Origin: Diplonema japonicum
Taxonomy: Eukaryota > Protista > Euglenozoa: Diplonemea
DNA length: 64,000 bases
Direction: 5' to 3'
Assembly: GCA_964019335.1 (NCBI GenBank)
Contig: OZ025675.1
Span: 434,001 to 498,000 of the forward strand
Below are positions 7,261 through 63,057 of this stretch, in pieces. Numbering within the stretch: position 1 is the stretch's first letter; each line of letters starts with the position of its first letter. Position numbers and translations under genes: made by a program. The notes beneath the pieces were generated by a model that was not told where the DNA came from, ran no database searches, and saw only the letters and a program-made list of their open reading frames with translations.

Positions 7261-7302
7261 AATTTACTATGACAGGAAACGAAGTGGTTAGCAACGGCCC
7301 CA
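7261..7302 (-). mobile_element. 39-nt micro-retroposon (diverged copy)
   Basis: Matches TCACTATGATAGGAACGAAGTGGTTAGCAACGGCCCGCC. Confidence 0.7.
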
Positions 7303-7313
7303 CAAAATAAAAA

Positions 7314-9211: not shown

Positions 9212-9670
9212 CTTCTCACTTGATAAAAAAAAAGGTGGGTGTGGTACCGACACCCCCCCCCTCCTCCTATCTATAAGTGAGCTAAAAGTAGTGTGAGGAT
9301 GGGGGAGAGGGAGAGGGGTCGAGAGAAAACTGAAAAAAAAAAAAAAAATGAAAATAAATAAAGCGATACCGAAAGAGGGGAAGAAAAGAAGAAGAAGAAA
9401 AAAATAATAAGAAACCTTGACCATAACAATAATAATAATAATAATGACATGAGCTAACAAAAAAAAAAAAAAAAAAAGTAAAAAAAAAAAAATAATGGAG
9501 GCCGGTGTTGATGGCACCCGGCGATAGATTTTTGTAATATTCTGACATGAAAAAAAAAAAAAAAAAAAAAAAAAAAAACATGTGCAGTGACTCACTGCAG
9601 TTTTTTGCAGAGCAGCAGCTTGCTGTTTTACATTGACCAAAAAAAAAAAAAAAAAAAAAAAAAAGAAGAA

Positions 9671-9708
9671 ATCACTGATAGGAACGAAGTGGTTAGCAAC
9701 GGCCCGCC
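9671..9708 (-). mobile_element. 39-nt micro-retroposon copy
   Basis: ATCACTGATAGGAACGAAGTGGTTAGCAACGGCCCGCC after an A-tract. Confidence 0.75.
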
Positions 9709-14477: not shown

Positions 14478-14508
<31 letters not shown>

Positions 14509-14512
<4 letters not shown>

Positions 14513-15080
14513 TTTATTAAATGAAAATCAGATGGCCTGATTTCACGCGTGGGGCCCCCTTTTTGACGAGTGAGTAAAAAAAGGAGTCAAAAAAGGGGAC
14601 CCCACAAGTGAAATCATGCTCTGATTTTATTCAATACTGCATTTTATTTAATGATGAGCTGCTCTCGCAAAGAATTTAGGTGCTAAGTGTGGCTTCGCTG
14701 CTGCCTGCTTGTAGCGGCACTATGCGACTCTTTACTAAACACGGTACTGGGTTTGGTATGATCAATTCGGCGAATCGATGTTGACGTTTATGTCAAACGT
14801 GATTCTGTGCACTTCTGAAGAAGTGGGCTGTGTCGAAGGGGGCAGGGCTGAAGGGGGCGTTGCAGGGGACTGCTGTGTTTGTTTAAGACGAGTGGTAGGT
14901 GCAAAACCTCTCCCACTCCTTCCTGTAGGCCATTTTGCTTGCCGTTTGAAGCCTGTCTTCCATCACAGTTTAGGCTGATGCCCTTGGCTCGCTTCCCGGT
15001 CACATTCGGTTCCCATTTTGCTAGAAATGACTGTGAACTGATTTTCACACAGCCCAGCAACGTTTGGCTTAATTGATTTA
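14509..15080 (-). mobile_element. Crypton-like element, family 2, truncated copy
   Basis: Terminal hairpin (CCCCTTTTTGAC..GTCAAAAAAGGGG); paralog of 41924-42665; encodes a degenerate KEWERFCTYH segment. Confidence 0.7.
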
Positions 15081-21809: not shown

Positions 21810-21850
21810 GAGGCATTTAAGGGTACCTGCGGTATGTGACAGGACGCCTG
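21810..21850. repeat. ~40-nt dispersed repeat GAGGCATTTAAGGGTACCTGCGGTATGTGACAGGACGCCTG
   Basis: Near-identical copy at ~30043-30084, both embedded in A-tracts. Confidence 0.7.
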
Positions 21851-25507: not shown

Positions 25508-25546
25508 TCACGATGATAGGAACGAAGTGGTTAGCAACGGCCCGCC
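25508..25546 (-). mobile_element. 39-nt micro-retroposon with 8-bp TSD
   Basis: AAATAAAT at 25500-25507 and 25547-25554 flanks the 39-nt core. Confidence 0.85.
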
Positions 25547-25554
25547 AAATAAAT

Positions 25555-25840: not shown

Positions 25841-26284
25841 AAGAAAAGAAATGGAACATTGGTTGAAATACTATTTGGCGTTAAGTGTGCAGCATGGTGG
25901 GGCTGTGCTAGGGTGTGTCCTTCGTGTCCAATCCCCAGCAGAGCGCTGGAGGAACGGATAGGGTCGAAGAACGCCGTAGAAAGGATACTCTCAGTGATGG
26001 TCTGTATCTTGCGGTTTGTGGTCTAGTTGCGGCGATCTCAGCTAGGGCCTTAAAAGAAACATCTCGGGAAGTATTTAGGAACAATACCCTTAAAAAGTTG
26101 CAGACAGGGCGGCTTGTGCAATGAAACACATGCATTTAAACTCTACTCACCTTACCGGCGTGTTCTATTTGTCGGACGTTGTTCCCATCACTCTTACACG
26201 TCTTATTTTTACTTGGAAAAGTAAAGAAATCAAGAAAAGAAACATCGTGGGAAGTATCTGGACAATCCCCTTAAAAGATTGCAT

Positions 26285-28486: not shown

Positions 28487-28920
28487 CACGAATTATTCGG
28501 TCTTACACCTGGAAAGGGGGTACATGATGGGTAGGATAAAGGCAAGAAAAAATAAAAAGAGGGGCTCACTGTTCATTAAGAAAGTCACACTTAATAGGGC
28601 AATGTGCCTTGGTGATGCAGCGCACTTCTGGATGCGAACCAGTTGTACGGCGTAGTAGTGCATTATTTCAAAAAAAAAAAAAAAAGAGAAAGAGGAACTG
28701 GTTGTTACGTGCCGGGGTAGTCGGTGGCGTGCCCCTTTTTAGCTTAGACAAGTCAAAAGACTCGTTCTTGCAAAAAGGAATGCAATATACACATTGGGCA
28801 CTAAATGAGAATGGAACAAAGAGAAAAGAAAGATTAAACAACAAGCAAATTGGTACCACACATGCCACACAGCACGTGACGGGTACACTCCCCCGTGACC
28901 CCCCCCCTCTTTTTTTGAAA

Positions 28921-29607: not shown

Positions 29608-30239
29608 ATTAAAAAAGAAAGAAAAAAAAACCCCAAAAAAAACCCGTTTTTCGTTCGTTTTCATTCTTTTTGAGCAAGAAAGAAAAATGCGAAATTCTTT
29701 ATTCGCACATTATCTCGCCCCCCCCCCCCTTTTTTTTCCTTTTCTAAATTGAGAAGTCCTGCGCTTTTTGGTACTTTTCTGGGTTCAAGTCGTGGTTTTG
29801 GAAGAAGAAAAAAAAAAGAGCTTTGAATTAAAACACTTTTAAGTAGGGACACAACATTCTCAGGGAAGTAAATAAATAGGCAGGCGCATCTGACAAAAAA
29901 AAAAGCTATCTCGATTTTAATGGTGCCATGCAGTACGTGACGAGGGTCCAAAAAAAAAAAAAAGAAGAAAGAAAAAAAAATAAAAGAAAACTGTAAACTA
30001 AGAAATCCCCAGGAATTTTTACCTTGTGTGAAAAAAAAAAAAGAGACATTTAAGGGTACCTGCGGTATGTGGCAGGACGCCTGAAAAAAAAAAAGGTTTC
30101 ACCATTTTCCCAAAGAAATATTCGCTGTTTTTTTTTTTTTCTTCTTTTTTTTTTCCAGTTTTTTCTTCGAGAATATCATATTTTTCTGGTGAAATATTTT
30201 TTCTTGGTTTACAGTACATAAAATCTCAAAAAAAAATAA

Positions 30240-35318: not shown

Positions 35319-37202
35319 TCAGTACACATATTTCTTTCTTACAACAGGGGTTTTTGTGTCCAGTAGTTCAAAGAGTGCTGTGGCTAGCGGTTCATTAGAA
35401 TAGCCAGAGAGCAATTCAATAGCCTCCAGTTTCTTCTTCCCATCTTCAAAGCAGTCTCCTTGCAGGTACAGCTTCGCTGCCTCGTTGTACTTCACCCAGT
35501 GCTTCGCCACCGACTCCTCCAGTGCGTACATCCACTCCTGGTCAAGGGAATGTTGCGGCACGGGATGCTGTGCTCTCCTCACACGGCTGTGGGTACGACT
35601 CCTCCCTCCTGACCTTGGTGTCAAGCTGCATTGCTCAGCAGAGGGGGTATCAAGGTTTGTCGGTGGCGGTGATACAGGTGGTGACACCACACCCTCCTCA
35701 TGGATCACTGCCTCCCACAGAATGGCTTCCTTCTCTTGAGCATGCTTCACAAAGGTGACCGCTTTGAGGACAATGCGCATTTCTTGTGTGACAGAGGCGT
35801 CCATGTAGGCAGCAGTGTTGCACACAACCCCAATACCCCACTCCGCACCGAGCCTCTCGTACACAGATGTCAGGACAGATGCGTGCCCGAAGATGCTGAA
35901 CCGCCTCACCTCGTTGTTCCCAAGGTCCCCAGCCAGAACCTTCCCACCGCACACGGCCACGTTCACTTCCATTCCTTTTCCTTGTCTCAGTGTGGTTGCT
36001 GTCTTCACCGCCGCCACTGCGTGTTGCATGCAGCGTTTTGAAGCGTTGAACGAGGCGTGCACGTGGTCCCCGACGAACAGGTCCAGCATCCCCTTCTGTG
36101 CACGAACAGCGTGCAGTGCGAACCCGATCACCTTCGCGTGGAGGCGGCTGAACTCTGCGTGATCCGCTTCCGCTGCTGCGATCGAGTTCTTCATGTTCAT
36201 CACCAGCATGGTGGCCCTTGTGGGTGCGAGGGCATGATACAGCTTCTTAGAGGCATTGGACAGGTCCGACTGTATAGACGGTGTGAGCGCGTGTGACTCC
36301 GACTGTGACTGGCTGCGCGACTGTGTGCTCGTCCCTTCTTCGGAGCTCGCAGAGTCGTCGCCTCCCTGCAAACAGGACTGGGGGAGGTAAGGTTTATACG
36401 ACCGGAGGTTCACAAGAATGGTGTGAAGCGCTTCATGCAGCTTTTCGGGGAGGTCTTCCTTCGAAAGGTCGAGGTGGGCGTCTGCCTCTTCAAGCTTGAA
36501 CCCTGCAAGGAAGGAGGCCACGTCGCGTGCTGCAAGAACACCCAGTTCCAACTTCTGTTTTTCAGCGAGAACCTCGTTGGCGAAGCCTCTTGTGAAGTAG
36601 TAGTCGAGGAGGAAGATAACGATCATCAAGATAAAGCTGAGCCCGGTTTTTTTGAAACCCCGCGCGCAGGGGAGGTTGGTACAGTTACAGGTTTCCTCCC
36701 AACGATAGTCGTGGTCACCGTTGAAGTCACCATCACCTATGTCGAGGAGGCCGAAGCGGGATACCTGTTCGGTTGCGGAGAATACCAGCCAGAAGCAGAG
36801 CACTGAGATGACAACGATGGAGGACCTTGACTTGATCCTGCACACGAGGAACACATCGACGACAAGTACGCCAAGGGCCCACAACCTGGGCAGCATGGCA
36901 CCCATGTTGTTGAAATCTACTAATATGATGGCAATAAGGTCCGCGTACCCCACAAGCTCTATGAAGGTGTCGGAGGGCTTCTTGTTCACAAACAGCCACA
37001 CCAAGCCGAACCCGTTTCCTGCGCACACAATGACAGATCCCACGATTGCCGTTGTGAATTTAGTAACGTACGCACCCACGGCTCCCAGCACGAACGGGAC
37101 GAGGAAGAACCAGAGTAGAATCTGCTTCCTCTTCACCATCACCTCATCATCGTCTGGGAGGGCCAGCATGCTGCTTAGGCAGCTCTGCGATTTTCTCGAC
37201 AT
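35319..37202 (-). CDS. family A copy A2
   Basis: ATG at 37202 (MSRKSQ) chosen by alignment to LALPDDDEVM of paralogs; the upstream ORF extension is homopolymer. Confidence 0.88.
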   Translation of the reverse strand: MSRKSQSCLSSMLALPDDDEVMVKRKQILLWFFLVPFVLGAVGAYVTKFTTAIVGSVIVCAGNGFGLVWLFVNKKPSDTFIELVGYADLIAIILVDFNNMGAMLPRLWALGVLVVDVFLVCRIKSRSSIVVISVLCFWLVFSATEQVSRFGLLDIGDGDFNGDHDYRWEETCNCTNLPCARGFKKTGLSFILMIVIFLLDYYFTRGFANEVLAEKQKLELGVLAARDVASFLAGFKLEEADAHLDLSKEDLPEKLHEALHTILVNLRSYKPYLPQSCLQGGDDSASSEEGTSTQSRSQSQSESHALTPSIQSDLSNASKKLYHALAPTRATMLVMNMKNSIAAAEADHAEFSRLHAKVIGFALHAVRAQKGMLDLFVGDHVHASFNASKRCMQHAVAAVKTATTLRQGKGMEVNVAVCGGKVLAGDLGNNEVRRFSIFGHASVLTSVYERLGAEWGIGVVCNTAAYMDASVTQEMRIVLKAVTFVKHAQEKEAILWEAVIHEEGVVSPPVSPPPTNLDTPSAEQCSLTPRSGGRSRTHSRVRRAQHPVPQHSLDQEWMYALEESVAKHWVKYNEAAKLYLQGDCFEDGKKKLEAIELLSGYSNEPLATALFELLDTKTPVVRKKYVY

Positions 37203-38295
37203 TTTTTTTTTTCCCTCCCTTTTTTTTTTTTTAAAAAGTTGAAAATGTGTCATGCACAATGGGGAAAAAAATTACTATGATGAGTGCGGGGGGGGGGGGG
37301 GGAGAGAGAGAGAACAACAACCCATCATTTTAACATTTTAACATGCAGGCGCGTTTTCTTTTTTTTTGTTGGTGCACACGATAATCCTCGGAAGGAGGAA
37401 AAAAAAAAAAAAAACTCATAGTTAAAAGACAATCCCACTTTGAGGACAGCCTGTCTGAGCTCGTATCTATTGATGCTCCCCTTCTGGAGCATAGCCTTCG
37501 AAAAAAAAAAAAGAAAAAAGAAAAAAAGAAAAAAAAGGTTACTGGCCGTGCTGGGGGTAAAACCTGGAGAAGTTTGTAAAACCCGTAAACACGTTGCCAA
37601 CGTTCCCCTTCTTGTTTTAGACAAGTCAAAGACTCATTCTTGCGGAAAAAAAAAAAAAAAAAAAAAAAAAGGAAAAAATAATCCGCGTACGCCTCACCTC
37701 ACCATACCCAGGTATATTACAAACAAAAGTTGGGCCTCCAGCTCGAGGGGTGAACCACATATTTGCAAGGTCTACATTTATTCTTCTACTGATCCTTCCT
37801 CAAGGTGGCTGTTACCCGGTTCTGGTATTGAGTGACATGAAATTGTCAGGAGGCCCTATTAAGGCGGGGGAGGGGGTTCTTTTTTTTAAAAAAGATTGAA
37901 AAAGTGGGGGGAATAGGTTTTCAGGCGAATAGACACCGGTGCGAACAGCCAAAAAAAAAAAAGACATAAGTTATAAAAAAAACTTTTTTTTTTGTTGGTT
38001 CACTCGGCAAAATCCTGAAAGAAATAGTTTTTTTTTTTTTTTTTTTTATTTTTTTTTCTTTTTTTATTTATAATGAGTTAAAGGAGGTCTTTGTGAGACG
38101 CCCCCTTGTTTTTATTCACTCACCTGCATCTAAAAAAAAAAAGGCACATTTGGTTTTTAGAAAGATAACCGAGGGTGACAATTTAATCTGGCGATGCGCC
38201 AAAAAAAAAATAAAAGAGACGAGATAAAGAAAGTTCCTGTTTTTTTTTTTGGACCCCTTTGTCTCTACTTATCTACCCCTTTCCCCTTCTGGGGC

Positions 38296-41420: not shown

Positions 41421-41462
41421 AATTCACTATGATAGGAACGAAGTGGTTAGCAACGGCCCACC
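41421..41462 (-). mobile_element. 39-nt micro-retroposon copy
   Basis: One mismatch to consensus; A-tracts on both sides. Confidence 0.8.
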
Positions 41463-41778
41463 TTAAAAAAAAAAAAAAAAAAAAAAAAAAGAAGAAGAAT
41501 AACTTTTAAATATGCTCCGCAGTTACCTCAGGGGCAGTCCTCCTGGTTTAAACCGTCAATTTTCGCTGCTTAGTCCTTGGCTCTGATCTACACGCATTAA
41601 GAAAAAAAAAAAAAAGAGGAAAAAAAAAAAAAAACTAGTTTGGCGCTTCATTTGTTTGTGCGCACGAGCGGGATTCTATCTAATAAAATAGCTCATTACG
41701 CTGCCATCAACTAGTTTTTTAGTCTCGACAATAATATTGTTAAAACAAAAAAAGAGTCGGTTGATTGTTGTTTGTGCC

Positions 41779-41873
41779 GTGGCATTGTTGGGCTTATCCT
41801 TCTACAGGTTAATCCTGGTTTGTTTGTGCACAGCCGGGGTTAACCTGTAGAAGGATAAGCCCAACAATGCCAC
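41779..41873. repeat. 95-bp palindrome with a perfect 34-bp stem (mini-MITE)
   Basis: GTGGCATTGTTGGGCTTATCCTTCTACAGGTTAA / TTAACCTGTAGAAGGATAAGCCCAACAATGCCAC; right arm recurs at ~57744-57786. Confidence 0.85.
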
Positions 41874-41923
41874 CACTACTCTTTTTAGCAATACACAATT
41901 CATTATCAATATAAAAAATAATA

Positions 41924-42665
41924 GCTATTTATTAAATGAAAATCAGGTAGCCTGATTTCACGCGTGGGGTCCCCTTTTTGACGAGTAAAAAAACGAGTCA
42001 AAAAAGGGGACCCCACAAGTGAAATCATGCTCTGATTTTATTCAATACTGCATTTTATTTAATTCACTATGATAGGAACGAAGTGGTTAGCAACGGCCCG
42101 CCATTTAATGATGAGCTGCTCTCGAAAAGAATTTAGGTGCTAAGTGTGGCTTCGCTGCTGCCTGCTTGTAGCGGCGCAATGCGCGAGTCTTTACTGAACA
42201 CGGTACTGGGTTTGGTATGATCAATTCGGCGAATTGATGTTGACGTTTATGTCAAACGTGATTCTGTGCACTGCTGAAGAAAGTGGGCTGTGTCGAAGGG
42301 GGCAGGGCTGAAGGGGCGTGGGTTTGATCGAGTGGTAGGTGCAAAACCTCTCCCACTCCTTCTTGTAGGCTATTTTGCTTGCCGTTGGAAGCGTGTCTTC
42401 CATCACAGCTTTGGCCTCTTTCTCGAGGCTGATGCCCTTGGCTCGCTTCCCGGTCGCCTTCGGTTTTCTTCCCATTTTGCCAGAAATGACTGTGGGCGTG
42501 AAATAAAGTACCTGATTTTCACGCCCAGCAACGTTTGGCTTAAAAACATGAGGAAAAAACCAGATACTTTATTTCACGCCCAGGTCTGAGCGTGAAATAA
42601 AGTGAAACCTGATTTATATCTTCCGGCCTAAATTCTTTGAGAGAGCTGCTCAGAATTAAATAAAA
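41924..42665 (-). mobile_element. Crypton-like element, family 2, with both ends
   Basis: Terminal hairpin; ATTTAATGATGAGCTGCTCTCGAAAAGAATTTAGG inverted at ~42627-42665; ORF 42221-42475 EDTLPTASKIAYKKEWERFCTYH resembles the N-terminal helix of Crypton-type YRs. Confidence 0.72.
42064..42102 (-). mobile_element. 39-nt micro-retroposon with 7-bp TSD; empty site known
   Basis: ATTTAAT at 42057-42063 and 42103-42109; the paralogous site at ~14647 has a single ATTTAAT and no insert. Confidence 0.9.
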
Positions 42666-43398: not shown

Positions 43399-45276
43399 TC
43401 AGTACACTTGTTGCCTTCTGACAATAGGGGTCTTCTTCCGTATCAAGTCGGCCAAGGAGTCGGCAACGGGCTCGTTCGTGTAGGTTTCCAAAAGATCAAG
43501 GGCCTCGTTCTTTGCCCCGCGCTCACCGAAACATTCTCCTTGCAGGTACAGTTTCGCTGCCTCGTTGTACTTCACCCAGTGCTTTGTCCGAGACTCGTCC
43601 AGTGCGTACATCCACTCCTGGTCAAGGTGGCCCTGCTGCTGTTGTTCACGTATCCTTCTAAGTGATGTTATGCTTGTTGGTGCGGGTTCGATTCCATTCA
43701 CAGCTGCCGCCGCAGACGGCGGGTTAACTGTTGGGGAAGCAGGTGGCGTCAGGAAGCCAGGTTCCCCGTCCCCCAATGCTTCCCACAGGACCACTTCCTT
43801 GGAGTGGCTGTGTTTCACCAAGGTGATAGCTTTTAGGACAATGCGCATCTCTAGCGTGACAGATGCATCCATGTAAGCTGTGGTGTTGCACACAACCCCA
43901 ATGCCCCACTCCGCACCGAGCCTCTCGTACACAGATGCCAGTACTGCCGCGTTCCCCATGATGCTGAACCGCCTCACCTCGTTGTTCCCAAGGTCACCCA
44001 CCAGAACCTTCCCACTGCACGCGGCCACGTTCAATTCCACTCCTTTTTCCAATCTTGCTTGTTTCAGTGTGGTTGCTGTCTTCACCGCTGCCACTGCGTG
44101 TTGCATGCAGCGTTTTGACGCGTTGAACGAGGCGTGCACGTGGTCCCCGACGAACAGGTCCAGCATCCCCTTCTGTGCACGAACAGCGTGCAGTGCGAAC
44201 CCGATCACCTTCGCGTGGAGGCGGCTGAACTCAACGTGATCCACCTCCGCTGCTGCGATAGAGTTCTTCATGTTCATCACCAGCATGGTGGCCCTGGCAG
44301 GGGCAAGCACATGCATCATCTTCGATGCTGTGGACACGTCGGACATTACTGATGTGCTGTGTGCTGTGTGAGACTCCGACTGCGTGTGCGAGGCAGTGTG
44401 GGAGTGCGTGCTCTCCTCGTCGGAGCTGTCAGAGTCACCGACACGAAGACAAGACTGCGGGAGGTAAGGTTTATACGACCGGAGGTTCACAAGAATGGTG
44501 TGAAGCGCTTCGTGAAGTCTTTCGGGGAGGTCTTCTTTCGAAAGGTCGAGGTGGGCGTCTGCCTCTTCAAGCTTGAACCCTGCAAGGAAGGAGGCCACGT
44601 CGCGTGCTGCAAGAACACCCAGTTCTAATTTCCGTTTTTCAGCGAGAACCTCTTCAGCGAAGCCTCTTGTGAAGTAGAAGTCGAGAAGGAAGATGGTCAT
44701 CATGACAAAGAAGGTGAGCCCGACACTGGAGGCCTTCCTGCTGCACGGCATGTTGTCACAGCCGCACACCTTTTCCAAGCGGGTGTCGTGGTCACCGTTG
44801 AAACCACCGTCGCCGATGTCGAGGAGGCCGAAGCGGGTGGCGTCCTCGGTGCTGGTGATGATGAGCCAGAGGCAGAGGATTGCAAGGATGATGATGGAGG
44901 ACCTTGACCGTATCCTGCACACGAGCATCACATCGATGACGATGACAGTGAGAGCCCACAACCTGGGTATCATGGAACCCATCGAGTTCAGATCTGTGAA
45001 GATGATGGCAACGAGGTCCGCGTACCCCACAAGCTCTATGAAGGTGTCGGAGGGCTTCTTGTTCACAAATAGCCACACCAAGGCCATGATGTTGGTACCA
45101 GCTGACACATATGAGGCGATCTGCCCAGAGGTGACCGAGGTGACGAAAATCCCTGTCGCACCCAACAATAAAGGTATGATGAAGAACCAAATAAGGATCT
45201 TCTTTCGCTTGACCATCACCTCATCGTCGTCGGGGAGGGCGAGCTTGCTGACAAGCCATTTGTGCAGCGACCACAT
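43399..45276 (-). CDS. family A copy A3
   Basis: 625-aa intact ORF with family motifs. Confidence 0.9.
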   Translation of the reverse strand: MWSLHKWLVSKLALPDDDEVMVKRKKILIWFFIIPLLLGATGIFVTSVTSGQIASYVSAGTNIMALVWLFVNKKPSDTFIELVGYADLVAIIFTDLNSMGSMIPRLWALTVIVIDVMLVCRIRSRSSIIILAILCLWLIITSTEDATRFGLLDIGDGGFNGDHDTRLEKVCGCDNMPCSRKASSVGLTFFVMMTIFLLDFYFTRGFAEEVLAEKRKLELGVLAARDVASFLAGFKLEEADAHLDLSKEDLPERLHEALHTILVNLRSYKPYLPQSCLRVGDSDSSDEESTHSHTASHTQSESHTAHSTSVMSDVSTASKMMHVLAPARATMLVMNMKNSIAAAEVDHVEFSRLHAKVIGFALHAVRAQKGMLDLFVGDHVHASFNASKRCMQHAVAAVKTATTLKQARLEKGVELNVAACSGKVLVGDLGNNEVRRFSIMGNAAVLASVYERLGAEWGIGVVCNTTAYMDASVTLEMRIVLKAITLVKHSHSKEVVLWEALGDGEPGFLTPPASPTVNPPSAAAAVNGIEPAPTSITSLRRIREQQQQGHLDQEWMYALDESRTKHWVKYNEAAKLYLQGECFGERGAKNEALDLLETYTNEPVADSLADLIRKKTPIVRRQQVY

Positions 45277-45877
45277 TCTTTATTTAAACCTATTTTTTTG
45301 TATTATTAAATAATTATGGCTTTGAGAAAAAAATGACAATACACAAGAAAAAAATAATGTTTCTCCTTCAATCTCCAAGGCGTGGAAACACCAAGAGAGA
45401 ACAGGGAGGGTAAATTGTTCTTGGGCAAGAAGTGTTCCCGCCCTTCGTGAAAAGAGGGACAGCTTTCCCTGGGGGAGGGAACTGACTCAGGGGTTGAGAA
45501 TTAAGGTGTGAATACTCAAAAAACGAAATCTTCTTTTTTTTGAGCATGACTCAGCCATCACAACCAGTCTAACTATGTGCCGATATAGCTCAGCTGATTA
45601 TGCAAAAAGGTTGTGGTGCTTTGTGTGACACCCCGAACTCGAGCCTTCTAGAGAGAAAGCTTAGTTTTGAAATAGGAGGGGCCACAGCAGTTAAACACCA
45701 AACAGAACAACCACAGGGAGGTGCTGAAGGCAAATCCCACTTGAATTGGGGGACCGGCTATGCTGGCAAGAAACGCGTTTCCAAGCACTTTTTTTTTAAA
45801 ATAAGGAAACGGAAACGACCACTGCATTCTCGCGTCACTCACATCTGGAGTTTTTGTAAGCAATGATAAGGAACTCT

Positions 45878-47629
45878 TTAGTAGTGTCTCCGATGTTGCT
45901 GGACTGGGATCTGGTTTGCTACATAACGCGAAACAACACCTGCAAGAGGCTCGTTGTCATACGATGCCAGCAAACCTTGGGCTGCTTGCTCCATCTTGCT
46001 ATCGTAAAGGCATTTCCCTTGCAGGTACAGCTTCGCTGCCTCATTGTACTTCGTCCAGTACCCAGCCTTAGACTCATCAAGAACGTACATCCACTCCCCT
46101 CCATCGCCACCATCGCCACCCACATCCTTCTGGTCTAATTCTTGATCGTTGCCCACAATGACTTCCCACAGTATAGCTTGTTGATCTTTGTTCTGCTTCA
46201 CAAAGGTGACCGCCTTGAGGATGATTTGTATCTCATGAGTCATGGAAGCGTCCACATAAACAGCAGTGTTGCACACAACCCCAATGCCCCACTCCGCACC
46301 GAGCCTCTCGTACACAGATGTCAGAACCGCTGCGTGTCCCATGATGCTGAACCGCTTCACCTCATTGTTTCCAAGGTCCCCAGCCAGAACCTTCCCACCG
46401 CACAATGCTATGTTTAATTCTGTGCCTTTTACATCACATTTACGTAAGTTCTTCGCTGCAATAACACCTCCCACTGCGTGTTGGACGCACCTCCTTGACG
46501 CGTTGAACGAGGCGTGCACGTGGTCCCCGACGAACAGGTCCAGCATCCCCTTCTGTGCACGAACAGCGTGCAGTGCGAACCCGATCACCTTCGCGTGGAG
46601 GCGGCTGAACTCCACGTGATTCACCTCCGCTGCTGCGATAGAGTTCTTCATGTTCATCACCAGCATGGTGGCAAATGCGTATGAAAGTGGTTGTGCAAGC
46701 ACTGCGTGTATCAACTCCGAGGACGATGCTGCCATCAGGGACGAGTGTTGTGAGCTTTTCTTTGAAGTGACATCGTATTCGAGGGACTCAGTGTCCTCCT
46801 GCAGACAGGACTGCGGGAGGTAAGGTTTATAAGACCGGAGGTTCACAAGAATGGTGTGAAGCGCTTCGTGAAGTCTTTCAGGGAGGTCTTCCTTCGAAAG
46901 GTCGAGGTGGGCGTCTGCCTCTTCAAGCTTGAACCCTGCAAGGAAGGAGGCCACGTCGCGTGCTGCAAGAACACCCAGTTCCAACTTCCGTTTTTCAGCG
47001 AGAACCTCTTCAGCAAAACCCCTTGTGAAGTAGAAGTCAAGGAGGAAGATCATCATGAACATAGCGAAGACCATCCCTGTGTCTGCAGCGCTTCTAGGAC
47101 AAGGCATGTTGGTGCACGAGCACTGTAGCTCGTAGCGGAAGTCGTGGTCACCGTTGAAGTCACCGGAGCCGATGTCGAGGAGGCCGAAGCGGAAAGCAGT
47201 CTCAAGAGAAGTGATAAAGAGCCACAGGGTGATGATTGACACTGCATTAATGGAGCACCTTCGTTTGACTCTGCAAACGAGGAACATATCGACGACCAGC
47301 ACAGCAAGCGGCCACATCCTGGGCTGCATGGCACCCATGGTGTTGTAGTCAGTTAACATGACGGACACTAATAGGCAGTACCCCACAAGCTCTATGAAGG
47401 TGTCGGAGGGCTTCTTTTTTACAAACAGCCACACTATCCCAGCACCACTGTACGCAACCGCAAAGTAGACTGAGATGCGTGTAAGTGTGAGCGCAACGTA
47501 TAGGCCTAAACTTGACAGAGTGAAAACCAACACTAGGTACCACAGAATAACCTTCTTTCGCTTGACCATCACCTCATCGTCGTCGGGGAGGGCGAGCTTG
47601 CTGACGAGCCAGTTGTGCGGCGACCACAT
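45878..47629 (-). CDS. family A copy A4
   Basis: 583-aa intact ORF. Confidence 0.9.
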   Translation of the reverse strand: MWSPHNWLVSKLALPDDDEVMVKRKKVILWYLVLVFTLSSLGLYVALTLTRISVYFAVAYSGAGIVWLFVKKKPSDTFIELVGYCLLVSVMLTDYNTMGAMQPRMWPLAVLVVDMFLVCRVKRRCSINAVSIITLWLFITSLETAFRFGLLDIGSGDFNGDHDFRYELQCSCTNMPCPRSAADTGMVFAMFMMIFLLDFYFTRGFAEEVLAEKRKLELGVLAARDVASFLAGFKLEEADAHLDLSKEDLPERLHEALHTILVNLRSYKPYLPQSCLQEDTESLEYDVTSKKSSQHSSLMAASSSELIHAVLAQPLSYAFATMLVMNMKNSIAAAEVNHVEFSRLHAKVIGFALHAVRAQKGMLDLFVGDHVHASFNASRRCVQHAVGGVIAAKNLRKCDVKGTELNIALCGGKVLAGDLGNNEVKRFSIMGHAAVLTSVYERLGAEWGIGVVCNTAVYVDASMTHEIQIILKAVTFVKQNKDQQAILWEVIVGNDQELDQKDVGGDGGDGGEWMYVLDESKAGYWTKYNEAAKLYLQGKCLYDSKMEQAAQGLLASYDNEPLAGVVSRYVANQIPVQQHRRHY

Positions 47630-47640
47630 TCTTTATTTAA

Positions 47641-50188
47641 CCATCTACTAACGAACGTCTATATGGGTCGATTTCAAACCCCCCCCCCAAAAAATGAGGC
47701 CAATTGACACTTTCGTTGCATCTTTGGGCATGCCGCCCCCTTTAAAAAAAATTCTCCATATTTCCCGGCCCATATTAGGAAAGAACCCGGGTCAGAAATC
47801 GCTCAAGGGTGCTATTTTGACCTATGAAAAATTCAGTATTAGGGTAAAAATCGGGTTTTAGTGGTTTTGGTAAAGTCAGAGAGTATGCTTTCAATAGCAA
47901 GAAATAGCGGAACTCACTGCTAGAAGGTGGCTGAAATGATGTTGGAAGTGGAAACCTTCATTTCCTAGTCTTCTGCGGCTGAGATGTGCTGCTGCTGAGT
48001 GGGCGACCTCGTTTCTTTTTCATACTATAGGCCTTCTACCGCATTTTGGGGGGGTTTTAAGACTCATTCGTAGGTGTACTTGGTGCTTTGGGCTTGTCAT
48101 GGGGTGGCGAGTATTTTTGTAATTTGGTTACTATTCTTTCTCGTTTTTCAAGTCCGGGAAGGCTATCAGGAACGTCCTCATACTCATCACAAGATTCATA
48201 GACTGGGGGCCTTTTCTCTGCCCTGTCTGCAGCGAGTTCTTTGATGATGTACTTTAGTTCTTTCTAGCTCGTGGACGCGCACGTAGCAAAACACCCTCCG
48301 GTGTGCTCCTGAGCTCATATGCACCTGTAAAATCCGGAAACTCAAGAATTTTCTTTTATGCACGGCGCACCGTATCGTATTGGTGATGTTAGCTATTTGT
48401 TCCACAGTTTTAATTGTTGTGGAACGAGGCACCCAAAGCCAAACACGAGAGAGCACACCAAAGTGGCTGTCCCTGTTGTTTTTGCCGTGTTTCTCCCCCA
48501 GAAACCACAGGGAAAACGTCCGATCGGGATATACATAACGAAGACCAAAAAGAACAAAGTAGCAAAACTCCTTTGCACGAAAGTGACGCCCACCGTCAGT
48601 CCAGAGTATCCACTCCATTTTTTCCTGTGCCCATGCTACTGTGGAACAAGACTTTTCCAACAGTAAGGCCAGCTGCCCTTATTTCATCATGTGTGATGTG
48701 GTCAAGCCTCATGCCTCTGACCAATTGGCGCCGTGTGGTGTCTTGTTGGCTACTAAATCAACCAGAAAATGATAGCAGAAGTGCCGCTAGAAGTTCCCTT
48801 TTACACACCACTTCACAAACTAGTGCAGCACAGTCGTTGCCACTGAGCTTCTCAAAAACCTCTGTGGCGAGTGTCCTGATCGCCGTGGTGTTCCCATTTA
48901 CCCTTTCTCGGTCCGAATACCATTTTTTTTTACCCCTAGCTTCTCAACAGCAAGTTTAAAAGCATCCATTTTTGTCACCCCCTCTTTTACTGAATTTGTG
49001 CAAAGTGAAAAAACCCATTTTTGCCCTAGGACTGAATTTTCTGGGTACTAGTAACACTCACTTTCCCATTTTCTGGGGTGTTTTCTTTCCTAACCTGGGC
49101 CGGGAAAGTTGTAGAATTTTTTTTCTTTGGGAAAAAGTACTTAGAGAAATATTGAAAGTGTCAATTGGCCTCATTTTTTGGGGGGGGGGGGTTTTGAAAC
49201 GATGCCATATATAGACGATTTGACAAAAAGTCTTTTGCGCAAAGGGCTTTCAATGCAATACGGCCCGGCCACTTCTTGCATCCTGCGCGGAAAATATGAA
49301 AAATAATAAGCTAAATGCTGCCCTAACTTTGCAAGAAAATGAAAAAAAAACGCCAGCCCAAATTTACCCTTAGAAATCACTTTAAAAAAAGAGCGCCCAG
49401 AAAGAGACCGGAAGAGGACATTATGAGTGATGGTAGCACTGATGGCTCATCCCTATTATGCAATTTTGATACAGACAGTGATTCTGATTCGAATTCGACC
49501 GATTCCGAGTCACAGCAGGGTGATTGGACGGCAAAGCCGGAGCAGTTGGAAGGCATCCGGTTTCGTGAGGATCGGAATCCTTGTGGACCCTGTTTTGACA
49601 CCAGAGGCTCCCAGATTATTCTGATTACTGGCGCACTGGCTCCACGCCTCTCAACCACACCCCTGGGTACGCCACCGTCATGTCAAGAGACCGCTTTTTT
49701 GACTATTCTGGGAAATCTGTGTTCCCACAGCGAAACAAACAAGCGTGCTGACTTCTACCTATCGCAAAGGCCAAGGCCTCCCGGAGATCACGGATGCCCG
49801 CAAGCCCAAGGACGCGCATCCTGTGGGGACACCCAGTTCCACCAGCACGTGAGCATCCTTTGCACCACAACGTGGCATGACATCAAGCCTGCCGACGTTG
49901 GATGTTCTGGTGACGTCAAATTTGACGTGTCGGCCAAAAGAGAATGAAAGCCGGAAAGGACATCTTCAAGTGCATATTTACAACACCGCAATGGGCGGAA
50001 CCGACGCTGGGTGATGCTGTGACAACGCCATAAACGCACCCTTATGACTTCGAAGTGGTCCCTGAAAGTATTTTCGTTCGCAACAGTCGATTCTTTTGAC
50101 TTGTTTTTTGTACCCCCTCTCGAGCTTCGGGAACGATATTTTTGACAATGTTGTGGGGGTGGGCCCTGCTGTGGGGCACCCTCTTTTA
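47641..50188 (+). mobile_element. piggyBac-like copy, right end lost, interrupted by a Sola-like element
   Basis: TTAA at 47637-47640 then CCATCTACTAACG; similarity to 909-2540 resumes at 49207. Confidence 0.85.
47665..49206 (-). mobile_element. Sola-like DNA transposon nested in piggyBac
   Basis: ~50-bp imperfect TIR (..CCAAAAAATGAGGCCAATTGACACTTTC); ATAT duplicated at 47661-47664 and 49207-49210; ORF 48196-48660 WTDGGRHF..EKHGKNNRDSHFG resembles the Sola2 SDG..F..HGK..D core. Confidence 0.75.
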
Positions 50189-50902
50189 GGAAGTTCTTGA
50201 GGGCTTGCTTCGCTGCATCGTAGCAGCGGGTAAAAGCCTTTTCTTTAGCCTCTCAACACGAGCAATCCGTGGTGGCAGGAACGTCTGGAGAGGTACAAGG
50301 ACAGTGCTGGTGCAGATATACCAGAGAAGGCTAACGAATGCATGAGAGCACGTTCGAATGCCACAGTTGCATCATTCCTCATTGCAATGGGAGCATGTGT
50401 GATTGGCAAGATCGGGGGTGCTGATGACCTTCCATAGCCGTGACGCGTAGCGTGCTTGCAAACGTTCCCATGGTGATATTTAGAGTGCTGGGGCATGGCT
50501 TGATCGCATTTCAAACAGAAAATAACATGCACTGAATTGTGTCTCAGTGCATCCTTTGCAGCAGCAGGGTACTTTTATTCACTGAATAAAATAACGTCCC
50601 TCCCGGGGGGGGGGGGAGGGGCAGATACACAAAGCCGACCCACTAGAGTATCGAAACGACATAGAAAAAGATTATTTTCCCGAAAAGCTGCTGAACAAAT
50701 CTCTTTCTGGACGGATTCATATGTGGTTTTTTTTTAAATATTTCTCCGATTAAAATAACGTTATTTAATTCGATATCGTTAAAATAACGGGACGGGTACG
50801 TAATAAGATTATGGGCCCTTTTTTTGCGTTATGGGATTTGATACCGGGTATTTTAAAATATCAATTTGATACGTTATGCTTGCGTTATAACGTGCAGGCT
50901 AT

Positions 50903-51475
50903 GATACACAAGAAAAAGAATAATGTTTCTCCTTCAATCTCCAAGGCGTGGAAACACCAAGAGAGAACAGGGAGAGTAAATTGTTCTTGGGCAAGAAGTG
51001 TTCCCGCCCTTCGTGAAAAGAGGGACAGCTTTCCCTGGGGGAGGGAACTGACTCAGGGGTTGAGAATTAAGGTGTGGAATGAATATGAGGGGTGTGAATA
51101 CTCAAAAAACGAAATCTGTTCTTTTTTTTGAGCATGACTCAGCCATCACAACCAGTCTAACTATGTGCCGATATAGCTCAGCTGATTATGCAAAAAGGTT
51201 GTGGTGCTTTGTGTGACACCCCGAACTCGAGCCTTCTAGAGAGAAAGCTTAGTTTTGAAATAGGAGGGGCCACAGCACTTAAACACCAAACAGAACAACC
51301 ACAGGGAGGTGCTGAAGGCAAATCCCATTTGAATTGGGGGACCGGCTATGCTGGCAAGAAACGCGTTTCCAAGCAAAATAAGGAACGGAAACGTTTCCCT
51401 GTTTCTTGCCAGTATAGCCCTAGGAGGGGGGTCCACTCCCATCTGGAGTTTTTGTAAGCAATGATAAGCAACTCT
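50903..51475. repeat. duplicated intergenic/3' region
   Basis: Near-identical to 45340-45877. Confidence 0.85.
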
Positions 51476-53254
51476 TTAGTAGTGTCTCCGATGTTGCTGG
51501 ACTGGGATCTGGTTTGCTACATAACGCGAAACAACACCTGCAAGAGGCTCGTTGTCATACGATGCCAGCAAACCTTGGGCTGCTTGCTCCATCTTGCTAT
51601 CGTAAAGGCATTTCCCTTGCAGGTACAGCTTCGCTGCCTCATTGTACTTCGTCCAGTACCCAGCCTTAGACTCATCAAGAACGTACATCCACTCCCCTCC
51701 ATCGCCACCCATGTCGTCGTCGCTTGATTCTTGATCATTATCCACAATGACTTCCCACAAAAAAGCTTGTTGATCTTTGTCCTGCTTCACAAAGGTGACC
51801 GCCTTGAGGATGATTTGTATCTCATGAGTCATGGAAGCGTCCACATAAACAGCAGTGTTGCACACAACCCCAATGCCCCACTCCGCACCGAGCCTCTCGT
51901 ACACAGATGACAGGACGGATGCGTGTCCCATGATGCTGAACCGCTTCACTTCGTCGTTCCCAAGGTCCCCAACCAGAACCTTCCCACCGCACAATGCTAT
52001 GTTTAATTCTGTGCCTTTTACATCACATTTACGTAAGTTCTTCGCTGCAATAACACCTCCCACTGCGTGTTGGACGCACCTCCTTGACGCGTTGAACGAG
52101 GCGTGCACGTGGTCCCCGACGAACAGGTCCAGCATCCCCTTCTGTGCACGAACAGCGTGCAGTGCGAACCCGATCACCTTCGCGTGGAGGCGGCTGAACT
52201 CCACGTGATTCACCTCCGCTGCTGCGATAGAGTTCTTCATGTTCATCACCAGCATGGTGGCAAATGCGTATGAAAGTGGTTGTGCAAGCACTGCAACATG
52301 TTGTATCAACTCCGAGGACGATGCTGCCATCAGGGACGAGTGTTGTGAGCTTTTCTTTGAAATGGCCTCATCGAGGAACTCAATGTCCTCTTGAAGACAG
52401 GAGCTGTCAGAGTCACCGACACGAAGACAGGACTGCGGGAGGTAAGGTTTATAAGACCGGAGGTTCACAAGAATGGTGTGAAGCGCTTCGTGAAGTCTTT
52501 CAGGGAGGTCTTCCTTCGAAAGGTCGAGGTGGGCGTCTGCCTCTTCAAGCTTGAACCCTGCAAGGAAGGAGGCCACGTCGCGTGCTGCAAGAACACCCAG
52601 TTCCAACTTCCGTTTTTCAGCGAGAACCTCTTCAGCGAAGCCTCTTGTGAAGTAGAAGTCGAGAAGGAAGATGGTCATCATGACAAAGAAGGTGAGCCCG
52701 ACACTGGAGGCCTTCCTGCTGCACGGCACGTTGTCACAGCCGCAGGCTTTTTCTAAGCGGGTGTCGTGGTCACCGTTGAAACCACCGTCGCCGATGTCGA
52801 GGAGGCCGAAGCGGGTGGCGTCCTCGGTGCTGGTGATGATGAGCCAGAGGCAGAGGATTGCAAGGATGATGATGGAGGACCTTGACCGTATCCTGCACAC
52901 GAGCATCACATCGATGACGATGACAGTGAGAGCCCACAACCTGGGTATCATGGAACCCATCGAGTTCAGATCTGTGAAGATGATGGCAACGAGGTCCGCG
53001 TACCCCACAAGCTCTATGAAGGTGTCGGAGGGCTTCTTGTTCACAAATAGCCACACCAAGGCCATGATGTTGGTACCAGCTGACACATATGAGGCGATCT
53101 GCCCAGCGGTGACCGAGGTGACGAAAATCCCTGTCGCACCCAACAATAAGGGCATAATCAAGAACCAAATAAGGATCTTTTTTCGCTTGACCATCACCTC
53201 ATCGTCGTCGGGGAGGGCGAGCTTGCTGACAAGCCATTTGTGCAGCGACCACAT
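51476..53254 (-). CDS. family A copy A5 (A3 N-half / A4-type C-half chimera)
   Basis: 592 aa; junction PQSCLRVGDSDSSCLQED. Confidence 0.9.
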   Translation of the reverse strand: MWSLHKWLVSKLALPDDDEVMVKRKKILIWFLIMPLLLGATGIFVTSVTAGQIASYVSAGTNIMALVWLFVNKKPSDTFIELVGYADLVAIIFTDLNSMGSMIPRLWALTVIVIDVMLVCRIRSRSSIIILAILCLWLIITSTEDATRFGLLDIGDGGFNGDHDTRLEKACGCDNVPCSRKASSVGLTFFVMMTIFLLDFYFTRGFAEEVLAEKRKLELGVLAARDVASFLAGFKLEEADAHLDLSKEDLPERLHEALHTILVNLRSYKPYLPQSCLRVGDSDSSCLQEDIEFLDEAISKKSSQHSSLMAASSSELIQHVAVLAQPLSYAFATMLVMNMKNSIAAAEVNHVEFSRLHAKVIGFALHAVRAQKGMLDLFVGDHVHASFNASRRCVQHAVGGVIAAKNLRKCDVKGTELNIALCGGKVLVGDLGNDEVKRFSIMGHASVLSSVYERLGAEWGIGVVCNTAVYVDASMTHEIQIILKAVTFVKQDKDQQAFLWEVIVDNDQESSDDDMGGDGGEWMYVLDESKAGYWTKYNEAAKLYLQGKCLYDSKMEQAAQGLLASYDNEPLAGVVSRYVANQIPVQQHRRHY

Positions 53255-53566
53255 TTCTTTTTTTTTTTTTTTTTTTTTGTTTAAAGAAAACGATTCTTAA
53301 GAAATGAAAGAGATTTTGAGATTCCGTGCTTGCGCACCGGCAGGGACATCAACAAGAAGTAAACGAAAATGCCAGTTGCACCCAACAACAAGATTCGCTT
53401 CGCCAACACCATTTGTGCAGCGACCACATTCAACATGTTGCAATATAGTAAGCACCGTACTCTTTGCGAGAGAAAAGGTGAAGCTTTACCCTATGAGACG
53501 TGAAAACGCCTGCATCACTACATGGCTCGCCGACTATGCAAAAAAACGTAAACTAAAGGGAACTCT

Positions 53567-55321
53567 TTAGTAGTGTCTCCGATGTTGCTGGACTGGGATC
53601 TGGTTTGCTACATAACGCGAAACAACACCTGCAAGAGGCTCGTTGTCATACGATGCCAGCAAACCTTGGGCTGCTTGCTCCATCTTGCTATCGTAAAGGC
53701 ATTTCCCTTGCAGGTACAGCTTCGCTGCCTCATTGTACTTCGTCCAGTACCCAGCCTTAGACTCATCAAGAACGTACATCCACTCCCCTCCATCGCCACC
53801 ATCGCCACCCACATCCTTCTGGTCTAATTCTTGATCGTTGCCCACAATGACTTCCCACAGTATAGCTTGTTGATCTTTGTTCTGCTTCACAAAGGTGACC
53901 GCCTTGAGGATGATTTGTATCTCATGAGTCATGGAAGCGTCCACATAAACAGCAGTGTTGCACACAACCCCAATGCCCCACTCCGCACCGAGCCTCTCGT
54001 ACACAGATGTCAGAACCGCTGCGTGTCCCATGATGCTGAACCGCTTCACCTCATTGTTTCCAAGGTCCCCAGCCAGAACCTTCCCACCGCACAATGCTAT
54101 GTTTAATTCTGTGCCTTTTACATCACATTTACGTAAGTTCTTCGCTGCAATAACACCTCCCACTGCGTGTTGGACGCACCTCCTTGACGCGTTGAACGAG
54201 GCGTGCACGTGGTCCCCGACGAACAGGTCCAGCATCCCCTTCTGTGCACGAACAGCGTGCAGTGCGAACCCGATCACCTTCGCGTGGAGGCGGCTGAACT
54301 CCACGTGATTCACCTCCGCTGCTGCGATAGAGTTCTTCATGTTCATCACCAGCATGGTGGCAAATGCGTATGAAAGTGGTTGTGCAAGCACTGCGTGTAT
54401 CAACTCCGAGGACGATGCTGCCATCAGGGACGAGTGTTGTGAGCTTTTCTTTGAAGTGACATCGTATTCGAGGGACTCAGTGTCCTCCTGCAGACAGGAC
54501 TGCGGGAGGTAAGGTTTATAAGACCGGAGGTTCACAAGAATGGTGTGAAGCGCTTCGTGAAGTCTTTCAGGGAGGTCTTCCTTCGAAAGGTCGAGGTGGG
54601 CGTCTGCCTCTTCAAGCTTGAACCCTGCAAGGAAGGAGGCCACGTCGCGTGCTGCAAGAACACCCAGTTCCAACTTCCGTTTTTCAGCGAGAACCTCTTC
54701 AGCAAAACCCCTTGTGAAGTAGAAGTCAAGGAGGAAGATCATCATGATTATAGCGAAGACCATCCCTGAGACTATTGCGTTTCTACGACAAGGCATGTTG
54801 GTGCACGAGCACAGTTGCTCGTAACGGGAGTCGTGGTCTCCGTTGAAGTCACTGGGGCCGATGTCGAGGAGGCCGAAGCGGAAAGCAGTCTCAAGAGATG
54901 TGATGATGAGCCACAGGGTGATGATTGACACTGCATTAACGGAGCACCTTCGCTTGACTCTGCAAACGAGGAACACATCGACGACCAGCACAGCAAGCGG
55001 CCACATCCTGGGCAGCATGGCACCCATGGTGTTGTAGTCAGTCAAGATGACGGACACTAATTGGCAGTACCCCACAAGCTCTATGAAGGTGTCGGAGGGC
55101 TTCTTGTTCACAAACAGCCACACTAGCCCAGCACCACTGTACACAACCACAAAGTAGGTTGAGATGCGTGGAAGTGTGAGCACAATGTATGTAACACCTA
55201 TACTTGACAGAATGAAACCAATCGCTAAGTACCACAGAAGAACCTTCTTGCGCTTGACCATCACCTCATCGTCGTCGGGGAGGGCGAGCTTGTTGAGAAG
55301 CCACTTGTGCAGCGACCACAT
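53567..55321 (-). CDS. family A copy A6
   Basis: 584 aa; C-terminal half identical to A4. Confidence 0.9.
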   Translation of the reverse strand: MWSLHKWLLNKLALPDDDEVMVKRKKVLLWYLAIGFILSSIGVTYIVLTLPRISTYFVVVYSGAGLVWLFVNKKPSDTFIELVGYCQLVSVILTDYNTMGAMLPRMWPLAVLVVDVFLVCRVKRRCSVNAVSIITLWLIITSLETAFRFGLLDIGPSDFNGDHDSRYEQLCSCTNMPCRRNAIVSGMVFAIIMMIFLLDFYFTRGFAEEVLAEKRKLELGVLAARDVASFLAGFKLEEADAHLDLSKEDLPERLHEALHTILVNLRSYKPYLPQSCLQEDTESLEYDVTSKKSSQHSSLMAASSSELIHAVLAQPLSYAFATMLVMNMKNSIAAAEVNHVEFSRLHAKVIGFALHAVRAQKGMLDLFVGDHVHASFNASRRCVQHAVGGVIAAKNLRKCDVKGTELNIALCGGKVLAGDLGNNEVKRFSIMGHAAVLTSVYERLGAEWGIGVVCNTAVYVDASMTHEIQIILKAVTFVKQNKDQQAILWEVIVGNDQELDQKDVGGDGGDGGEWMYVLDESKAGYWTKYNEAAKLYLQGKCLYDSKMEQAAQGLLASYDNEPLAGVVSRYVANQIPVQQHRRHY

Positions 55322-55444
55322 TTCCCCCCTTTTTTTTTCTTTTTAAAAATACGTTCCTGATTCTTTAAGAAATGAAAGAGATGTTGAAATTCTGTGCTCG
55401 CGCACCGGCAGGGACATCAACAAGAAGAAAACAAAGACGCTCAT

Positions 55445-55695
55445 CTCACAAGTTTCTTTTCCTGTGACACCTTTCCTCTAGAGACGATAACAGGTGAACT
55501 ACATCGTCAATATAAAAGACTATTCCTTTAGGTATGCAAAGAAGAAGAAGAAGAGAAAAGAAAAAAAAAAACTCGACTTTAAAAACTAGTTTGTCTTGGC
55601 CCCTGTGGGCCTTGTAGGCGCTGTTTAACCTGACACATCCTGCATTCAAAAACATGCGAAAAGACTCTTCTTTTTTCTTTCCTGACCCCCCCAAC
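55445..55695. repeat. duplicated upstream segment
   Basis: Near-identical to ~62620-62865. Confidence 0.8.
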
Positions 55696-55866
55696 CCCGA
55701 GTCAAAAGGAGGTTGTTGTGAGACGCTGTTGTCTTGAAGTCCAGTAAAGGAAAAAGGAAAATCAGATTGTTAACTGTTTGGTACTAACCAATTAAAGGCA
55801 GCTTTTACAAAGACCAGCCAAGAGTCAACGCCACGTGGGTGTAAGTGTTATAAAGGAATGGAAAAA

Positions 55867-56192
55867 GAATATATATGAGTTAAAGGAGGCCGGTGTTGGC
55901 GCCCTGCACAAGTACTGTCTACTTGATTACAGGGGGCGCACCGCGGCCGAGTTGTAGCTTCTTCTGCGTTCCGCGTCGTGTTCTTAATGCGTGCGGTGTA
56001 CAGCCCAACCCCAGCCGGGGCGTCCCGGGTAACCAAGATTCTGCGCTCGTGCAGTTTGCTGCCTGTTCGTCACCCTGAGCATCTGCATTGTTCTTCCACT
56101 CGGGCGCTACCGGTGATGACCGACGAAGAGGTCAACAGCGAACAACACATCTGATGTTTTTCTTATATTTTCATGTTATCTCCACCACCTTG
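55867..56192 (-). mobile_element. SINE-like element, copy 4, flanked by 131-bp direct repeats
   Basis: 55736-55866 equals 56200-56330 with one mismatch. Confidence 0.88.
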
Positions 56193-62981: not shown

Positions 62982-63006
62982 AATTCACTATGATAGGAAC
63001 GAAGTG
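62982..63006 (-). mobile_element. partial 39-nt micro-retroposon
   Basis: AATTCACTATGATAGGAACGAAGTG. Confidence 0.65.
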
Positions 63007-63057
63007 CTCCCCTTTTGGGGTCGAATAAAACTCATAGTAAAAGAAAATCCCACTTAA

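Follow-up and report, generated by a model that had tools for sequence, protein, structure and literature searches.

The stretch analysed here, a 64-kb segment of the genome of Diplonema japonicum (positions 434001-498000 of contig 28 in an assembly of 62.5 Mb, which all genome counts below cover; hereafter the window), carries several copies of a short unit that, by its sequence, is the 3' tip of a long interspersed nuclear element (LINE). An earlier sequence-only reading had described this unit as a 39-mer repeated on one strand, and this was confirmed: the full 39-mer was matched three times in the window with no more than one mismatch each (25508, 41424 and 42064; chance expectation 0), a 21-nt core added the copies at 7277 and 9682, and the first 20 nt added the one at 62985, giving five copies and one rearranged copy, in all of which the 39-mer as given lies on the plus strand. 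All long open reading frames (ORFs) of the window are located on the minus strand; the strand on which the 39-mer was read is antisense to each of them, and the unit itself is in gene sense. Read in gene sense, it begins with GGCGGGCC and ends with GTGAATT, which is followed by T-rich sequence.

The five copies, all placed on the minus strand, consist of the tail of the LINE only. The copy at 42064..42102 (39 nt) is an exact match whose last three tail bases, ATT, overlap a target-site duplication, and a second copy resides at 25508..25546. That at 41421..41462, recovered with the 39-mer, is 42 nt long, carries the variant GGTGGGCC... and is located between T/A-rich tracts. The two copies recovered with the core are found at 9670..9708, with a 3-nt deletion near the tail and in a T-tract (gene sense), and at 7261..7303, where an older, diverged copy shows several substitutions and an indel. 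Five copies had been said to stop at essentially the same edge; GGCCCGCC is exact at 9670, 25508 and 42064, the copy at 41424 has GGCCCACC and the edge is degenerate at 7261. The partial copy reported at 62982 was located at 62985..63023 on the minus strand. It is a unique sequence, 5'-truncated at about -96 of the LINE, and an internal deletion has taken out the hairpin that lies across the usual edge (see below). A second tail subfamily lacking this hairpin was considered for this form and rejected, as it has a single match in the genome.

Insertion of the unit and its host repeat

The copy at 42064 is a 39-nt insertion with a 7-bp target-site duplication, as proven by an empty paralogous site. 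Alignment of 41850-42350 with 14440-14900 showed two paralogous stretches of about 95% identity that differ by exactly 46 nt, and these 46 nt correspond to the 39-nt unit plus one ATTTAAT (plus strand; 42057-42063 and 42103-42109), both absent from the paralog. Thus, the filled site and the empty, uninserted target (14639..14662, no strand assigned) are both present in the window, in line with what had been proposed from the sequence alone. The duplication claimed for 25508 was likewise found, the 8-bp sequence AAATAAAT (plus strand) occupying 25500-25507 and 25547-25554 on either side of the copy. A full-length element at one of the loci fetched from the genome (L043) is surrounded by the 8-bp duplication TTTTTATT, and therefore at least part of its 'T tail' is duplicated target. 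Informative duplications measure 7-15 bp and, together with the empty site, they support the suggested target-primed reverse transcription with duplications of variable length. For the two short insertions in the window that can be read without ambiguity, the priming strand terminates in AAT, which can pair with the AUU of the tail, and there is no added T-run. In contigs from public runs, whose RNA or DNA kind is uncertain, the unit is present in many A/T-rich contexts; they also show an empty-site form, which is indistinguishable from the paralog at 14639.

The repeat into which the 42064 copy was inserted had been taken for a Crypton-like element, an assignment that could not be upheld. None of the ORFs near either paralog matched a tyrosine recombinase in a Pfam search, and the insertion abuts a pair of 35-nt terminal inverted repeats (42103-42137 and 42627-42661), whereas Cryptons are without such repeats. 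The inverted repeats are 86% complementary, start with ATTTAAT and delimit a unit of about 560 bp (42103-42661), at the outer edge of which the 42064 copy is exactly positioned. A near-perfect palindrome with 31-nt arms (90% complementary) and a 21-nt spacer occurs at 41949-42031 and in the paralog near 14530-14610. Contig depth over 41540-42121 is very high in all four public runs, indicating that this region is a high-copy repeat.

The parent LINE

Judged by its sequence, the unit is the 3'-terminal 42 nt, and essentially the whole 3' untranslated region (UTR), of a young diplonemid retrotransposon of the type without long terminal repeats, about 6.45 kb in length. In the genome, 124 copies run on upstream of the unit's edge into common sequence; among the first 30 loci about one third did so, and the others started right after a T-tract. 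Alignments of the 10 kb upstream of long copies revealed nested, 5'-truncated copies of one element, and two loci, L043 and L044, have about 6.45 kb in common, in which ORF1 encodes about 660 aa and ORF2 1451 aa. ORF2 matches RVT_1 (1.1e-19) and Exo_endo_phos (2.5e-9), i.e. a reverse transcriptase (RT) and an apurinic-type endonuclease (APE), and its nearest proteins, from a diplonemid transcriptome and from LINEs of Diplonema papillatum, are 40-53% identical; no domain match was obtained for ORF1. Of the two origins that the sequence-only reading had offered, a LINE 3' tip is therefore the one supported by the long copies.

Twelve nt separate the ORF2 stop codon, TAG, from the unit, which thus equals the 3' UTR without its first 12 nt; the tail is identical between unit and LINE, and every base of the unit is 3' UTR sequence. 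At its 5' end the LINE reads ...GTACTTTATTG, the end of a spliced-leader-like sequence, followed by GT. At its 3' end GTGAATT runs into a T-rich tract, and a poly(A) or simple-repeat tail was not found at the ends of the copies. This end departs from the usual LINE tail; a poly(A) or simple repeat is not defining for all LINE clades. In the D. papillatum genome paper, LINE-like ORFs are listed only in general terms and a rigorous transposon analysis is deferred (PMC10161547).

Copy-length profile and the sharp edge

New in this study is a copy-length profile with a single-site cut-off. The 21-nt core (-36 to -16) has 507 matches in the genome at no more than one mismatch, and its reversed control has none. 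Patterns located further upstream recovered 124 copies across the edge (-48 to -25), 97 at -96 to -73, 88 at -113 to -90, 44 at about -350 and 17 at the 5' end of the LINE, all counts being lower bounds obtained with patterns of 21-24 nt at 1-2 mismatches. Accordingly, about 383 copies (75%) drop out within six bases at the GGCGGGCC edge, compared to 27 over the next 48 nt and another 27 over the 6.1 kb from about -350 to the 5' end. The smooth distribution of truncation points that ordinary LINE truncation would have produced did not occur; copies end in a spike of more than 100-fold at one site, 12-13 nt after the ORF2 stop codon. The truncation profile is based on these pattern counts and on about 45 inspected copies.

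At the edge itself, 271 copies have TTTT and two further bases directly ahead of CGGGCC. Among the 100 copies listed, these two bases are GG in 57, TG in 33, CG in 5, TC and TT in 2 each and GA in 1, the short copies starting at G-42 in 57% and one base later in about 35%; 18 further copies have A or G directly before GGCGGGCC. None of 30 inspected short copies extends 1-5 nt past -42, and the limit is thus hard upstream and ragged by 1-2 nt downstream. A minor second cluster of 5' ends is located at -100 to -103 (L031b, L035 and L036). A search for poly(A) directly after -43, made to see whether a polyadenylation site lies there, gave no match in 47 loci, which comprise too little sequence to count. 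Short and long copies have an identical consensus, and no substitution is diagnostic of either class. GTGATTT, the variant of the tail seen most often, was counted in 3 long and 14 short copies, near the overall ratio of 24:76; it was considered as a marker private to short copies and rejected because of the three long ones. Microhomology at the 5' junction of LINE-derived cDNA was also rejected as a source of the edge: the LINE has no T-run upstream of it, so that such pairing cannot explain the spike. Descriptions of such tail-only units were not found in the literature searched, and the single-site truncation profile is unusual and apparently undescribed.

Sister LINE families

Two more related LINE tails, starting with CAGGCGTCC and AGGCGATCC, were identified in the fetched loci and in the window. 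In the latter, 41-nt tail-only copies of the tail starting with CAGGCGTCC reside on the minus strand at 30043..30083, bounded by T-tracts, and at 21810..21850. Eight of the ten sister copies, and one additional copy, are T-bounded and tail-only, 39-44 nt in length and with a common start; two are long. The long copy at L038 has an intact ORF2 of 1459 aa, the C-terminus of which, ...PRQKGSNTR, is homologous to ...RPQKGSIIR of the first family. In both sister families the stop codon (TAG and TGA, respectively) lies 14 nt ahead of GGCG. In one family, four short copies begin 10-12 nt downstream of the stop codon and one begins 13 nt downstream; in the other the distance is 11-13 nt, the ambiguity arising from T bases in the spacer. 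The spacer sequences differ among the three families, and the short copies carry the tail specific to their family.

The occurrence of the same edge at homologous positions in three families thus favours a position-specific limit on the LINE RNA, and it disfavours a single founder copy as well as a GC stem as the general cause. Since the three 3' UTRs are nearly equal in length, the stop codon, a protein bound to the tail and the conserved GGCG are inseparable as the ruler from which the edge would be measured. A ruler that counts only the length of the cDNA is unlikely because priming in T-runs of varied length leaves the edge unblurred.

Further tail-only copies of the sister families, again T-bounded and in gene sense, are present at L015, L022, L025, L029, L032, L034 and L040. 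Sister tail copies often adjoin copies of the unit studied here, and the intergenic DNA is therefore partly built of stacked LINE tails.

RNA structure at the edge

In the predicted fold of the last 141 nt of the LINE, an outer stem formed by GGGAACG and CGUUCC, the latter inside the unit, encloses two hairpins. The first, CCCC-AAAA-GGGG, also codes for the conserved peptide PQKG. The second, GGCACGCC-ACCGC-GGCGGGCC, straddles the edge and appears in both the minimum-energy and the centroid fold, and the short copies begin at the first base of its 3' arm. They include the whole 3' arm; hence the stem would already have been opened, and this is not the position expected from a simple stall. The 141-nt fold is not significantly better than those of shuffled sequences (z -1.5). 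A hairpin, GAUUGUC-GUUA-GGCGAUC, also crosses the edge in one sister family; in the other there is no such edge hairpin, and the predicted partner of the spacer is the far 3' end. A search of the terminal 700 nt of the LINE against Rfam, which includes ribozymes, gave no match at E ≤ 10. In the window, no Rfam family was matched at gathering score, and ARAGORN found no tRNA or tmRNA.

The peptide (R)PQKGS..R at the C-terminus of ORF2 is common to the LINE families (L044:9800-9885 and L038:6290-6340), and in the first family its codons, CCCCAAAAGGGG, double as a predicted RNA hairpin.

Orientation and genomic setting

The 100 listed copies are distributed over 26 contigs, on which only 3 of 74 neighbouring pairs show a change of strand (about 37 expected at random). 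All three changes run from plus to minus along the contig, at 631-672 kb of contig C1, 636-820 kb of C4 and 256-355 kb of C12, and they look like single divergent switch regions. As the orientation of the unit is otherwise constant across contigs, tail copies map gene polarity at the scale of chromosomes. In 3-kb loci around short copies, the longest frame of at least 200 aa lies on the sense strand of the unit in 12 cases and on the other strand in 2-3 (loci with LINE frames excluded). On the plus strand of the window, runs of at least 10 A and of at least 10 T number 87 and 58, respectively. The availability of T-tracts, at about 60:40, therefore cannot account for the near-100% sense orientation of the insertions, which calls for selection or for a coupling to transcription or replication.

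The predicted genes of the window comprise two tandem families that code for predicted membrane proteins of 580-740 aa; the C-terminal halves of these proteins are conserved, and none of the proteins matched Pfam at E ≤ 0.001. The families are located on the minus strand, at 2764-4608, 35319-37259 and 43399-61391, and at 17834-28489. At one of the fetched loci (L030:1460-1500, sense), a short copy is immediately preceded by ...CATTGTAGTGA and ten T, apparently 11 nt left over from an earlier tail, which suggests that T-runs of older insertions serve as targets for new ones. Another dispersed element ends with ...TAGTCATAAAGAATT and a T-run (L031:3064 and 4733, L042, L025 and L018). Given its internal hairpin of CGAGCAAAAA and TTTTTGCTCG, the T-run inside this element belongs to it and is not a target tract.

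Discussion

We consider it probable, with moderate confidence, that the tail-only copies are 3' tips of the LINE placed by target-primed reverse transcription, and that their edge is created anew in each event. The endonuclease of the element would nick the A-rich strand of A/T-rich sites, and cDNA synthesis would be primed by the A-rich 3' end, annealed to the terminal AUU(U)n of the RNA. About three quarters of the integrations left no more than the first 40-42 nt in the genome. The edge would be re-created each time by something that acts at a fixed position on the LINE RNA, be it an obstacle to the RT or a template whose 5' end lies there, and it would be neither inherited from one founder copy nor due to the GC hairpin as such. 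Some short copies may later be re-copied from read-through transcripts.

In several respects the copies resemble the 'dead on arrival' copies of APE-type LINEs such as L1, CR1 and the trypanosomatid ingi/L1Tc: they are nested with a common 3' end, duplications are variable, APE and RT domains are present, and only a few percent are full length (17 of at least 507). Unlike in L1, CR1 and ingi, truncation is not spread but about 75% of the copies end within 1-3 nt at -42, the element ends with GTGAATT and a T-rich tract instead of poly(A), and orientation is tied to gene direction across whole contigs. A specific 3' tail other than poly(A) is also characteristic of stringent LINEs and their partners among the short interspersed nuclear elements (SINEs), such as UnaL2/UnaSINE1 of eel and ZfL2 of zebrafish, where the enzyme recognises this tail (PMC4176376). 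By analogy, the unit might likewise be a short non-coding, tail-bearing sequence mobilised or produced by the LINE enzyme. Unlike stringent SINEs, however, it has no promoter-bearing head (tRNA, 7SL or 5S), consists of LINE 3' UTR only and has a fixed 5' end; a 3' tail shared with a LINE was found, and a head derived from a small RNA with an internal promoter was not (ARAGORN, Rfam). We know of no SINE as short as these units. A parallel might also be drawn to telomerase, an RT that copies a short defined stretch and halts at a fixed boundary set by an RNA or protein element beside the template. This likeness is functional only, and in the present case 25% of the events read through.

Among the alternatives, a self-propagating micro-SINE has a limited, though appreciable, chance of being correct. 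In this scenario, one or a few copies that happened to be truncated at -42 would have inserted in gene sense into T-tracts and passed on their edge; the units would be transcribed within polycistronic pre-mRNA, the LINE enzyme would recognise their tail in trans, and the cDNA would enter the upstream U-tract and be joined by A/T microhomology to the T-tract of a new target. Short copies are indeed nearly always located between T-tracts, all of them are in gene sense and so co-transcribed, and variants recur at unit positions 35, 36 and 40 in short copies but not in 15 long ones. However, the same distance between edge and stop codon in three families would need three founders at homologous positions, and random founders would differ, whereas the edge is hard. 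The shared consensus of short and long copies and the presence of GTGATTT in both classes also argue against separate short masters, and one strand of the predicted outer stem is missing from the 42-nt unit. A simple stall of the RT at the GC-rich hairpin GGCACGCC-ACCGC-GGCGGGCC, as put forward in the sequence-only reading, appears doubtful and in our view improbable. While the hairpin is predicted in both folds and has a counterpart in one sister family, a stall would be expected at the 3' base of the stem (about -34), and the copies span the whole 3' arm and end at the loop; moreover, the second sister family shares the edge without such a hairpin, and the fold is no better than those of shuffled sequences.

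It is very unlikely that the copies are retrocopies of an independent small RNA, derived from a tRNA, snoRNA, rRNA or spliced leader, which was later captured as a LINE tail. The discrete ends, the G at the start and the T-run after the unit do resemble an RNA polymerase III-type unit. Against this, no tRNA, tmRNA or Rfam family was matched, no exact match was obtained in metagenome contigs, and the sister LINEs have different tails in the same geometry. An extra 5' G, which might indicate a cap, is present in only 10 of the 18 purine-preceded copies among about 380 short ones and does not amount to a cap signature. The unit is also unlike the spliced-leader end found at the LINE's own 5' end, and a spliced-leader relic was rejected for this reason. 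The proposal of a micro-SINE copied from a discrete small RNA is accordingly not supported, the unit being wholly LINE 3' UTR. Finally, the inverted repeat exactly at the edge might have hinted at snap-back self-priming, in which the cDNA of the whole hairpin folds back and primes the second strand and the loop is then opened. The start predicted by this model, GGCGTGCC (the complement of the mismatched 5' arm), occurs 0 times in the genome compared to several hundred occurrences of GGCGGGCC, and we regard the model as practically eliminated.

Several points speak against an edge re-created in each event, or weaken the case for it. The 42-nt unit has no significant fold by itself, and in thermodynamic folding the RNA upstream of -43, left uncopied after the tail, forms no strong terminal helix (z -0.08); candidates for the limit are a bound protein, a ribosome at the stop codon and a processed RNA end. 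Duplications are unprovable in homopolymer T-tracts: in 30 short copies their mean was 6.8 as compared to 6.4 in shuffled pairings, a statistic that is uninformative because both flanks of short copies are T-runs. The patterns behind the truncation profile differ in length and mismatch limit, and the sister families are represented by 10-11 copies. In addition, none of the 14 short GTGATTT copies belongs to the class with TG at the 5' end (about 5 expected), and two pairs of short GTGATTT copies carry an extra rare substitution that is absent from the three long ones. This linkage and these double variants count in favour of a micro-SINE; short masters may have given rise to part of the family, and a degree of re-copying among short units, or segmental duplication, is possible.

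For a limit re-created on the LINE RNA, a more specific reading might be speculated upon, to which we assign a small chance only: the tail-only copies could be natural 'toeprints', left when the RT meets a ribosome or release-factor complex still on the ORF2 stop codon. In a variant of the same reading, the RNA would be cut at the leading edge of that ribosome. In vitro toeprints of pre-termination ribosomes place the RT stop at +16 nt from the P-site codon, and bound release factors shift it by another 1-2 nt (PMC5641913). This corresponds to a ribosome toeprint about 11-13 nt after the stop codon. The genomic edge falls on the 13th-14th nt in the first family and on the 11th-14th in the other two, and it differs by 0-2 nt from what a terminating ribosome gives in this in vitro assay. 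If the toeprint reading is true, all families of the LINE clade would have cDNAs that end 12-13 nt beyond the stop codon, and the hundreds of short copies would be genomic fossils of a coupling between ORF2 translation and template choice (cis-preference).

The 5' truncation of LINEs is normally broad and poorly understood. Here, one position takes about 75% of the events and the geometry recurs in three families, which provides a natural system for studying how the first strand is terminated, the candidates being an anchored protein, a ribosome, a processed template and re-copied short masters. Organisms with trans-splicing use pyrimidine-rich spacers for mRNA processing. The units lie in pyrimidine-rich spacers, always in gene sense, and may thus shape intergenic signals, and their orientation offers an inexpensive way to follow gene polarity along the chromosomes of this diplonemid.
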